This document shows, one piece after another, positions 2,981 to 60,670 of a DNA stretch of 64,000 bases. The position numbers and the translations under genes are program-made. Position 1 is the stretch's first letter. Each line of letters starts with the position of its first letter. Under the pieces are notes generated by a model. The model saw only the letters and a program-made list of their open reading frames with translations, was not told the DNA's origin and did not search any database. Source of the stretch: Mobula birostris (Eukaryota); NCBI RefSeq assembly GCF_030028105.1, contig NC_092398.1, forward strand, positions 28,676,424 through 28,740,423, written 5' to 3'.

Positions 2981-3238
2981 TCGTCAGAGTTTGAACAGCC
3001 TGGTGAACGATCCCCATGGCAAAAGGCATGTCATTAACATAGCGGGCAACATTTCTGATAATCTTTTGATTGCGGTTCAGATCGTCCACGAAAGACTTCA
3101 CAAGTGGACTGATGGCCACAAACTTTCCTGTAGTATAATTAAAGCAAACAGCCGCTTCGCCATTGTAAGCAAACTGCAGGGTAGCCATTGAGAACTCCGA
3201 ACCTTTACCAGAGAAAGTAATTTGACTGATGTGCATTC
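2981..3238 (-). CDS. WB: MHC W-category beta chain gene, exon 2 (beta1 domain); downstream exons lie left of the window
   Basis: 258 nt open exon, acceptor tttgcttgccag, donor A|GTAAGT, phase 1/1: GMHISQITFSGKGSEFSMATLQFAYNGEAAVCFNYTTGKFVAISPLVKSFVDDLNRNQKIIRNVARYVNDMPFAMGIVHQAVQTLT. Motifs match MHC beta1/class I alpha2. No Ig exon is visible in the window to confirm this. Confidence 0.8.
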
Positions 3239-3439
3239 CTGGCAAGCAAATAATAATCGATCCATTAACCATTTGTGAGAGTGAAACGGCTCATTTTAAA
3301 ACCGTAAAATTAATCAACCTGAAACAACAAATTTGTCTCTCCCTTCTGTGGATACCACACCATTCTGACAGCAAAAAGGTGCTACTCCTCTAGAGCCACC
3401 TCTCCCTCCCACCGTAAAACTCCAATAGTTGGGATTTGG

Positions 3440-58400: not shown

Positions 58401-60670
58401 TTCTGTATTTGCACAGTTTGCTGTGTTTTACAGACAGGTTGTTTGTCCACCCTGTTGGGTGTGGTCTTCCATTGATTCATTTATGGTTATTGGATTTACC
58501 AAGCATGCCCACGAGAAATCAAATCTCAGGGCTGTATATAGTGAAATGTATGTGCTTTGATAATAAATTTACTTTGAACTGTAGAACTTCGAAAGAAAAT
58601 ATGACTGAAGTGGATTAATAGATATTAATCATCATCCAGTGCAATTGACATTTACAAAAAAATCTTTAATTTGTTGTTTTAGAAATCGGTGAGCTCTATC
58701 TGTACTCAGAGAAACCAGCTATCTTCGGGGAGGTAAACACTTTGACCTGTTTCGTCAGCGGCTTTTTCCCACCGGCCGTAATTGTAACGTTGCAGAAGAA
58801 CAAGAAGCCTGTCAATGGCGAAGTTAACTCCTCACACCTCTCATTTGGCAAAGACTGGCGATTTCAAGTGCTCCACTACACATACATCCAGCCAGCAAAC
58901 AGTGACGTATACTCTTGTAGAGTGCTCCATAACATTAGCAAAGAGGAAAAAGTAGTTTACTGGGGTAAGAGAATTGAACCATTCTGTTATGGTTATTATT
59001 CTATAGATTTGCTGAGTATGTCTACAGGAAAATCAACCTCAGGGTTGTATATGGTGATGTATATGTAATTTGATAATAAAATTACTTTTTGAACTTTGAA
59101 ATGCTCTGGGGTAAATGATACGGGGCAGCACAGTAGCATGGTGGTTAGTGCAGTGCTTTACAACACCAACTAAAATTGAGATTCGATTGCTGTCTGTAAG
59201 GAGTTTGTATGTTCTCACTGTGACCGCATAGTTTTTGTCCAACTGCTCTGATTTCTTCTTACATTCCTAAGATTGGGTTAAAGTTACTGAGTTGTGGGCT
59301 TGCTCTGTCGGCACTGGCAGAATGGCGGTATTTGTGGGCTGCCCTCAGCACAATCCTCACTGATATGATTTGATGCAAAAATGATGCATTTCTCTGAATG
59401 TTTTGATCTTTCAATGTACATGTGACAAATAAAGCTAATCTCTGAAATCCAGCTCATTGCCTGCAGTGCTGACTGACAGTGTTTTCCAGTGGAAGTGTTG
59501 TTGAGATCAGGATTTTAGCAAGTACAAGGTCAAGCTTCCCTTAGCACATTTCAGCTGGCCTTGTACCACTCCAACCCGAGCTGGAGCCTAGCAATAGATT
59601 CACTAATGAGGGGTAGTGTTGAAGCACTCCATCCTGGATGAGATTGGTTTTAACCCTCTTGTTGCTCTGTTAGGCCAGTGAGAGGAAAAGCAGCCCAGGT
59701 TCCTGCTTACACTCAGTATCCAGCAATTCCCAGTGGAACGTGAAGGATGCAACGTGACTATTTGGGCTTTATGTCGATCAACCCCATTGCTCATGTTGCA
59801 TTTTTTTTAGTGATGCAGCTCGGAAAGGGCCGTTCCAGCCGCACTGCTCAGCAGCTCCTGATTTTTAACAATGACCGATTAACCTACCAATTGGTATGTC
59901 ATTAGACTGTGGGAGTAAACTGGAGCACCTGGAGGAAACCCAATCTGTCATGGGGAGAACATACCAACTACTTGCAGACAGCTACAGGAATTAAACCCCG
60001 TCACTGGTATTGTAAAGTGTTGTGCCAACCTCTGCATTACTGTGCCATTGTTAGTTGACAGCCATTTAATCACAAAGTCACAGAAAAGTACAGCACAGAA
60101 GCAGGACCTTTGCCCCATCTAATCTGCCTACTCCCTTTGACTGTAGCCGTACCATCCCTGTATCTTTCCAAACTTCTCTTAAACACCGAAATCGAGCTCG
60201 CATCCACCACTTCTGCTGGGAGCTTGTTCCACACTCTCACAGCTATCTGAGTGAAGAAGTTTCCCCTCATGTTCGCCTTTTACCCTTCATCCATGAGCTC
60301 CAGTTGTAGTCCCATCCAACCTCAGGGAAAAAAACCTGCTTGCATTTAACCCATCTATACCTGTTGAAAAGTATATTCAGCCAAGAAGGGGGAACACGAG
60401 AAATCCAAGAGGACAATTTAGTTGTACCTCATCTTTGTTCAAGCTGATTTTAAAACTAGTTCCTTGTTTAAAAAATAATTGTGTGCTTTGTTCACAGAAC
60501 CAGAAGAGCAAAGTAGTGCTGAAGAACTGGATACAAGCCAGCTTGCTGTTTTGATCTGTGGGCTGATTATAGGAATACTTGGCACAGCAGCTGGACTCTA
60601 CTTATGTTTTGCGTTGCTACTGTCTGGCTGGAGCTCTTTGATAATTCGGATCAATACTCCTTCTCAATGA
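46280..60670 (+). CDS. WA: MHC W-category alpha chain gene (class II-like alpha chain with beta2m-like alpha2 domain); join(46280..46355,56839..57093,58683..58964,60498..60670), 261 aa
   Basis: Four exons of 76+255+282+173 = 786 nt give an open frame to TGA. All three introns are GT-AG and phase 1, as expected for MHC/Ig domain exons. Domain order is signal peptide, alpha1, Ig-C1, connecting peptide+TM+tail. The W-category assignment rests on beta2m motifs in alpha2 (established family knowledge). Confidence 0.88.
46506..47486. mobile_element. Solo-LTR-like element (related to 28182-29446) with 4-bp TSD, in WA intron 1
   Basis: tgtcacgtatcccgtg...ccccatcaca with TSD gacc at 46502-46505 and 47487-47490. 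The rejoined host reads as CR1 [13 protein letters not shown]. Confidence 0.82.
48330..49992 (+). mobile_element. L1/Tx1-type LINE ORF2 fragment interrupted by a hAT element
   Basis: KSPGSDG and [10 protein letters not shown]|[12 protein letters not shown]...DQTGF motifs. Confidence 0.88.
48964..49805 (-). mobile_element. hAT (Charlie/SPIN/GTF2IRD2-like) internal-deletion derivative with 8-bp TSD
   Basis: TSD atgtagat at 48956-48963 and 49806-49813; TIRs cagggatcagcaacct / aggttgcctaccccg; transposase remnants [12 protein letters not shown] and [16 protein letters not shown]. Confidence 0.92.
50566..51307. mobile_element. hAT MITE with 8-bp TSD and an internal second inverted-repeat pair
   Basis: TIRs cagtggtccccaacc / ggttgggaacccctg; TSD ctttagag at 50558-50565 and 51308-51315; inner tagggttgccaac (50678) ... 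gttggcaacccta (51183). Confidence 0.92.
54905..55480. mobile_element. Two V-SINE/HE1-like SINE copies in opposite orientation (54905-55145 -, 55215-55480 +)
   Basis: tRNA-like heads and conserved gtttgtatgttc(t)ccc...gtgggtt(t)c cores. Confidence 0.72.
55925..56670. repeat. Degenerate ~60-bp minisatellite in WA intron 1
   Basis: About 12 diverged units of cctacccttgtacactgagatccctctgtcccttgacactccccaccattcacggtgtgtgt. Confidence 0.85.
56839..57093 (+). CDS. WA: WA exon 2, alpha1 domain ([48 protein letters not shown]...LTNNSLPPN)
   Basis: Polypyrimidine tract and CAG acceptor, 255 nt open, donor G|GTGAGT, phase 1/1. Size and strand pattern (TFF..IAYYD..VQFHL) fit a divergent class II alpha1, with a C-terminal NNS sequon. 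Confidence 0.78.
58683..58964 (+). CDS. WA: WA exon 3, Ig-C1 alpha2 domain, beta2-microglobulin-like
   Basis: 282 nt: [94 protein letters not shown]. Both Ig cysteines are present; TAG acceptor and W G|GTAAGA donor. Confidence 0.95.
59124..59432 (+). mobile_element. V-SINE/HE1-like SINE
   Basis: ggcagcacagtagcatggtggttagtgcagtgctttac head; gctgtctgtaaggagtttgtatgttctc core. Confidence 0.75.
60498..60670 (+). CDS. WA: WA exon 4, connecting peptide, transmembrane helix and tail
   Basis: CAG acceptor, phase 1; [57 protein letters not shown]. Contains the class II alpha TM signature G-x3-G-x2-G-x3-G (60560-60595). Confidence 0.88.

Follow-up and report, generated by a model that had tools for sequence, protein, structure and literature searches.

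Do the major histocompatibility complex (MHC) genes on one chromosome of the giant manta ray, Mobula birostris, encode a conventional class II molecule, as their database names imply, or do they belong to the W-category, which has been proposed as an evolutionary link between classes II and I (PMC8713811)? The question is raised by a stretch of 64,000 nucleotides (hereafter the window; assembly GCA_030028105.1, CM057584.1, 28,676,424-28,740,423, in the orientation of the record, as placed by two public loci whose overlap with it agrees in every base), in which a first-pass annotation made from the DNA letters alone had placed three MHC-family units. All three were found at the positions it gave, and the exon coordinates and strands bore out the described arrangement of one intact alpha gene (WA) on the forward strand and two beta-type genes (WB) on the reverse strand, diverging from it. 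Our analysis indicated, with a probability of about 0.87, that the window is part of the manta W-category MHC cluster and contains a WA_DS10-type alpha gene, the first two coding exons of a distal WB_DS1-type beta gene and, between them, a decayed WB_DS1-type gene (WB-psi).

The WA gene runs from the ATG at 46280 to the TGA at 60668-60670 and has four exons with AG/GT borders and phase-1 junctions. Exon 1 (46280..46355, forward strand) carries the start codon and the signal peptide, lies in a GC-rich stretch and ends in phase 1 at a G/GTGAGT donor; it was recognized by identity to the annotated coding sequence and by a leader that is conserved in stingray orthologues. It is followed by a repeat-filled first intron of 10.5 kb. 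Exon 2 (56839..57093, forward), bounded by an AG acceptor and a GTGAGT donor, encodes the membrane-distal alpha1 domain, which is modelled as strands followed by helices. Exon 3 (58683..58964, forward) encodes alpha2, an immunoglobulin (Ig) domain of the C1-set (Pfam C1-set, 7.5e-19) that resembles beta2-microglobulin (beta2m) in its Protein Data Bank (PDB) matches and in its alignment to the human protein. Exon 4 (60498..60670, forward) encodes the connecting peptide (CP), the transmembrane (TM) helix (217-247 in the model), a short tail and the stop codon, and corresponds to the little skate WA DS10-like TM row of the published Dataset S3. Its TM segment has the class II alpha-type glycines (GxxxGxxGxxxG), in agreement with the WA rows of that data set. 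The spliced coding sequence of 786 nt gives a product of 261 amino acids that agrees at every residue (100% identity) with XP_072102580.1, which RefSeq calls 'RLA class II histocompatibility antigen, DP alpha-1 chain-like'. In an AlphaFold model of the whole chain (mean pLDDT 66), strands and then helices precede an Ig domain and a TM helix, and the best structural matches of this model were class II alpha chains (DMA, DPA and DRA; E ~1e-11 over ~185 columns).

The alpha2 domain told a different story from this class II-type build. Hallmarks of WA alpha2 domains are Y8, L/F37, L55, F/Y57 and W61 (Okamura et al., PNAS 2021, PMC8713811), whereas conventional class II alpha2 domains always have Trp at Ig position 37 and lack a conserved W61 (PMC8713811). 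In the manta chain, the tyrosine at position 8 (EIGELYLY) aligns with Y10 of beta2m and falls in the same column of the Dataset S2 rows, Leu replaces Trp at Ig core position 37 (VTLQKN, compared with VDLLKN in beta2m), and LSFGKDW aligns with LSFSKDW of beta2m, so that L55, F57 and W61 are all present. The domain scored 65.3 bits over 90 residues against human beta2m, and the 60 best PDB sequence matches were all beta2m (60/60), with no class II alpha chain among these best 60. Both Ig cysteines are retained, and all 33 columns that are invariant across 14 WA chains are kept in the manta WA. W61 together with L55 and F/Y57 was conserved in 12 of the 14 aligned homologues; two Hemitrygon akajei WA paralogues (P0021 and P0026) differ from the other 12 chains in having Arg in place of Trp 61 (..YGKDR..). 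A class II build combined with a beta2m-like alpha2 is the combination that defines the W-category. Thus, the earlier claim of a W-category alpha chain with a beta2m-like alpha2 was upheld by the hallmark residues, the PDB ranking, and the class II-type architecture and TM motif.

Homology searches further specified the lineage. No match was found for the alpha1 exon among Pfam families and PDB sequences. When alpha1 alone was used in an exhaustive search of representative proteins (E up to 0.001), five proteins were recovered: four elasmobranch alpha-type chains and, weakly, a 1173-aa protein. The Heterodontus and Amblyraja matches agree almost residue for residue with the published rows 'zebra bullhead shark WA DS10L' and 'little skate WA DS10 like' (Datasets S1-S3). 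The manta WA aligns throughout (alpha1, alpha2 and TM) with the published WA DS10-like rows and can therefore be assigned to the WA_DS10 lineage; its alpha2 is ~73% identical to the little skate row (32 of the first 44 positions, counted by eye).

Given such a strong resemblance, could exon 58683-58964 simply be a plain beta2m gene, with the 'alpha1' and 'TM' exons being open reading frames (ORFs) that arose by chance? Its best sequence matches are indeed beta2m, the Hemitrygon orthologue has been named 'beta-2-microglobulin-like', and beta2m is MHC-linked in sharks (PMC8713811). On the other hand, alpha1, alpha2 and TM exons are joined at the same, predicted borders in the orthologous RefSeq models of seven elasmobranch species (stingrays, sawfish, skate and sharks), the TM exon is conserved and bears the class II alpha glycine motif, and the Ig exon, whose last residues are ..VVYW, ends in phase 1 and lacks the C-terminus of beta2m. 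We therefore give practically no credence to a beta2m gene at this position.

The distal WB gene showed a class II beta-type architecture, with leader, beta1, beta2, TM and tail exons mapped on the reverse strand. The gene is where the first-pass annotation put it, with the caveat that only its leader and beta1 exons are in the window, position 2981 being the donor end of beta1; the remaining coding exons lie before the window start. Exon 1 (4386..4536, reverse) contains the start codon (ATG at 4536) and a 50-residue leader that is 100% identical to residues 1-50 of XP_072102493.1. Exon 2 (2981..3238, reverse) encodes beta1 (Pfam MHC_II_beta, 1.2e-6) and, from an internal Met onward, is identical to the start of XP_072102492.1 and XP_072102494.1. 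The other exons, all on the reverse strand, were placed by mapping the RefSeq isoforms on the public locus: beta2 at window coordinates -6438..-6719, CP/TM at -10050..-10154, an optional exon at -19366..-19452 and the last exon at -32234..-32338. The optional exon, of 29 residues, interrupts the cytoplasmic tail in two isoforms. The gene extends over 36.9 kb. Its reading frame continues from the leader through beta1 into beta2, is intact across all exons and would give a chain of 293 amino acids, the length found in its paralogues. The leader exon is surrounded (window 3300-5350) by GC-rich, proline-codon-rich sequence of low complexity that is open in several frames on both strands and yields many spurious long ORFs.

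Several residues of this chain bear on its family. In conventional class II, position 61 of beta2 is always Trp, whereas WB beta2 mostly has Gly at this position and Pro at 57 (PMC8713811). The manta beta2 (ILPNRDGTFQ; exon outside the window) has P57 and G61 and no Trp, and beta1 has Q6 (GMHISQ) as well as A32 and G35 (FAYNGEA). Beta1 contains a single Cys, and therefore an intradomain disulfide is not possible. For beta1 of the distal WB, the claim of class I contact residues is thus only partly true, since Q6, A32 and G35 are accompanied by Ala, and not by Asp or Glu, at position 37. We also considered a description of WB beta2 as clearly 'class I-type' and rejected it: by sequence alone, its scores against alpha3 of class I and against beta chains of class II were alike (~65-69 bits), as the 2021 study had also found (PMC8713811). 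As for the lineage, beta1 of the window matched basking shark (Cetorhinus) protein P0013 (E 1e-15), whose beta1 is nearly identical to the published row 'great white shark WB DS1L'; the distal WB therefore belongs to the WB_DS1 lineage. Both the manta beta2 and the beta2 of the pseudogene are similar to the published WB DS1-like beta2 rows of little skate and dogfish, and tblastn of the WB pieces in the window gave E values from 1e-12 to 1e-48, well beyond what chance would produce. In catshark, a WA_DS10-like/WB_DS1-like pair has been reported (PMC8713811 appendix).

With both chains described, the RefSeq names can be weighed. That these are ordinary MHC class II alpha/beta genes is suggested by the automatic names ('class II histocompatibility antigen ... 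alpha/beta chain-like'), by the class II-type whole-chain fold and exon structure, and by the Pfam MHC_II_beta match on beta1. However, alpha2 has Leu 37 and W61 instead of Trp 37 and finds beta2m in its 60 best PDB matches, WB has G61 and P57 instead of the invariant W61 of beta2, and the nearest homologues are the published W-category rows. A conventional class II identity is thus very improbable. The earlier suspicion that such genes could be mis-annotated proved justified, as RefSeq presents them as ordinary class II alpha and beta chains and the Hemitrygon orthologue of WA as beta2m-like.

Some observations nevertheless weigh against the W-category assignment or the gene models behind it. 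First, beta1 position 37 is Ala in the distal WB, in contrast with Glu in the published shark WB_DS1 rows, and W61 thus lacks one of its two proposed hydrogen-bond partners. Second, none of the RefSeq isoforms of the distal WB (XP_072102492-494) joins leader to beta1: in isoform X2 the leader is joined to beta2 and beta1 is skipped, and in X1 and X3 the protein begins within beta1, at a Met. Third, no splice-junction evidence for WA was obtained from four RNA-type runs. Because these runs gave no junction records, the splicing of WA rests on the RefSeq models and the orthologues. RNA contigs from the same runs did fall on WA, at 58728-58877 (alpha2 exon) and 60597-60837 (last exon and 3' untranslated region), with a depth of 2-4; other coverage in the window was heavy and confined to repeats, and non-repeat intron bins were empty. 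The WA contigs are compatible with weak transcription and prove neither splicing nor silence.

Between the two intact genes lies the decayed WB. Its beta1 remnant (~25092-24973, reverse strand; ..GLRFGYDGKDITYFDF..) was recognized by its tblastn matches with WB homologues (lowest E, 4e-8) and by three-frame reading, and has an in-frame stop after ...LNHHKPCL, where the helix is expected. In the motif GYDGKD, D37 is present and Gly stands at position 32 instead of A32. The beta2 remnant (13645-13345, reverse strand) was found by tblastn in two frames (E ~1e-15), the frame shifting near 13466. C>Y and C>S changes have removed both Ig cysteines, P57 is kept and position 61 falls at the frameshift. 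Relaxed tblastn and DNA comparison of the two promoter regions gave only chance-level matches for leader and TM exons of WB-psi, and public annotation calls no gene at the beta2 remnant. In a beta2 tree, WB-psi was placed on a long branch beside a basking shark WB_DS1-like sequence and outside the tight ray WB cluster, with weak support (82/77). The premature stop, the frameshift and the lost Ig cysteines confirm that the proximal beta gene is dead. WB-psi looks like the old head-to-head partner of the manta WA. The 11-kb gap between its beta1 and beta2 remnants is filled by several LINE-type reverse-transcriptase ORFs on both strands (window 16900-23400), one of which (18279-19250) matched RVT_1 with 1.9e-22.

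Loss of this partner raises the question of what remains for WA. The gene might be an orphan of low or no function that is heading to decay: its head-to-head WB is a pseudogene, only trace RNA contigs were seen on its exons in the examined runs, and its long first intron is full of repeats. On the contrary, WA has kept an open frame, canonical splice sites, the Ig cysteines, all hallmarks and every family-invariant position (33/33), and RNA contigs from runs of unspecified tissues show presence, not absence. An orphan on its way to decay is therefore quite unlikely, and a W-category alpha gene that is still intact remains our preferred view.

The question then becomes which beta chain serves as its partner. 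WA and the intact distal WB are divergently arranged, with the pseudogene between them and their starts 41.7 kb apart, precisely as the earlier estimate of ~41.7 kb had it (46280-4536 = 41,744 bp). The first-pass annotation had concluded that WA works with this distal WB since the proximal head-to-head partner is dead. In favor of such a pairing, divergent transcription is a feature of the published head-to-head pairs (PMC8713811), the frame of the distal WB is intact across all exons, and leaders of WB and WA type also lie head-to-head elsewhere on CM057584.1, near 25.15 Mb, where a WA-type leader exon (L003:2013-2087, reverse) and a WB leader (L003:8488-8640, forward) are 6.4 kb apart. The WA-type leader at that site is 92% identical to that of the window and opens the coding sequence of an annotated gene, the product of which (251 aa) has SRCR domains; this reflects either exon capture by another gene or a mis-joined model.

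However, the wider chromosome did not single out the distal WB. More WB genes are present on CM057584.1 at 25.1, 28.84 and 29.04 Mb, and beside those at 28.84 and 29.04 Mb there are intact WA alpha2 and TM exons (L005:37945-40003 and L002:35031-37086, both reverse) in convergent orientation, each ~6.6 kb past the WB stop, with 6.6 kb between the stop codons. These exons are 85-87% and 72-77% identical to those of the window, with all hallmarks present; no RefSeq protein for the two further copies appeared among the homologue search results. The chromosome thus has at least three WA copies, and the repeated ~6.6 kb WB/WA spacing suggests recent segmental duplication. No WA exon was found within 10 kb of the distal WB stop. 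Furthermore, identity among the manta WB paralogues amounts to 91-100% in leader, beta2 and TM (87-100% with the tail included), compared with 59-86% in beta1, and pairing need not be partner-specific when these parts are so similar. With two convergent WB/WA pairs on the same chromosome and near-identical paralogue parts, position gives no reason to prefer the distal WB as the partner, and the absence of a RefSeq isoform with leader plus beta1 for this gene points in the same direction. The proposed pairing was therefore not sustained as stated; a partnership with the distal WB is possible but doubtful, and pairing of WA with a WB of the convergent-neighbor type, or promiscuous pairing, is at least as likely.

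A broader, unlikely scheme would be that the manta W-category has been reorganized: the ancestral head-to-head WB_DS1 partner is dead, WA copies stand in convergent units beside expanded WBs that have diversified in beta1 and remain almost the same in leader, beta2 and TM, and the beta2m-like WA is a largely interchangeable partner for many WB platforms. If true, this would be a living approximation of the class I logic of one light chain for many heavy chains, and would suggest diverse ligands for the W molecules of rays. A strict version, with one WA for many WBs, was rejected, as intact WA alpha2/TM exons were found beside two other WB genes.

Several other features of the window concern its regulatory and genomic setting. 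A CCAAT/Y-box-like element is located ~220-235 bp 5' of the ATG in both W genes and is putative, having been read from the sequence only: CTGATTGGCT, an inverted CCAAT of Y-box-like form, at 46044..46053, in GC-rich sequence ~230 bp before the WA ATG, and CCAAT at 4760-4756, ~220 bp upstream of the WB ATG. The region upstream of WA additionally contains GCGCATGCGC and CACGTGAC motifs. Retroelement ORFs are numerous in the window. Just upstream of the WA promoter (42685-44973, reverse strand), there are ORFs that by eye resemble a GIY-YIG endonuclease and a zinc-finger/hAT-type transposase; they gave no Pfam match at E 0.01 and are probably decayed mobile elements.

How much of this is new? No occurrence of manta, Mobula or stingrays was found in the 2021 study and its supplements (PMC8713811), and a literature search found no paper pairing Mobula with MHC class II. 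The manta locus, already in RefSeq under misleading names, adds a new species to a family that was described in 2021 and leaves existing knowledge of the W-category unchanged. The manta genes extend the W-category to myliobatiform rays, in which current RefSeq names (class II alpha/beta-like and, for the stingray orthologue, beta2-microglobulin-like) hide it. The W-category is, to our knowledge, known from few species, and we know of no ligand or function for it. The locus also presents a multi-copy system, with diverged beta1 domains and nearly identical contact and anchor parts, which should help to choose chains for pairing and ligand experiments.

A WA/WB heterodimer and its surface expression have been shown for tiger salamander only (PMC8713811). 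By analogy with the salamander proteins, the manta WA and a WB chain would both be membrane glycoproteins of type I and would associate as a heterodimer of class II style, of which alpha1 and beta1 may build the membrane-distal platform. The beta2m-like alpha2 would dock under this platform via W61, F57 and L55, and may contact WB beta2 through Y8-P57, as beta2m does in class I. The manta W molecule is most likely a non-classical MHC molecule.

Of the known systems compared, the W-category is the closest. The manta genes share with WA_DS10/WB_DS1 of cartilaginous fish (PMC8713811) their domain and exon architecture, the alpha2 and beta2 hallmarks, the class II-type TM motifs and divergent transcription. 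They differ in that the head-to-head WB is a pseudogene and the first intact WB upstream begins at a distance of 41.7 kb and is 36.9 kb long, that beta1 position 37 is Ala, that the recurring unit elsewhere on the chromosome is a convergent WB/WA pair, and that the WB paralogues diverge mainly in beta1. Like a conventional class II heterodimer (e.g., HLA-DR or -DM), the manta W molecule has two chains with four main coding exons each, TM glycine motifs and paired genes, whereas its alpha2 lacks the core Trp and has a beta2m-type W61, its beta2 lacks W61, and its beta1 has a single Cys. With beta2m and class I it shares the LSFxKDW contact loop of alpha2 and, in WB beta2, the P..DG motif of class I alpha3. 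However, beta2m is a secreted single Ig domain, whereas the manta beta2m-like domain is fused to alpha1 and a membrane anchor, and the membrane-distal domains are found on two chains rather than on the one heavy chain of class I.

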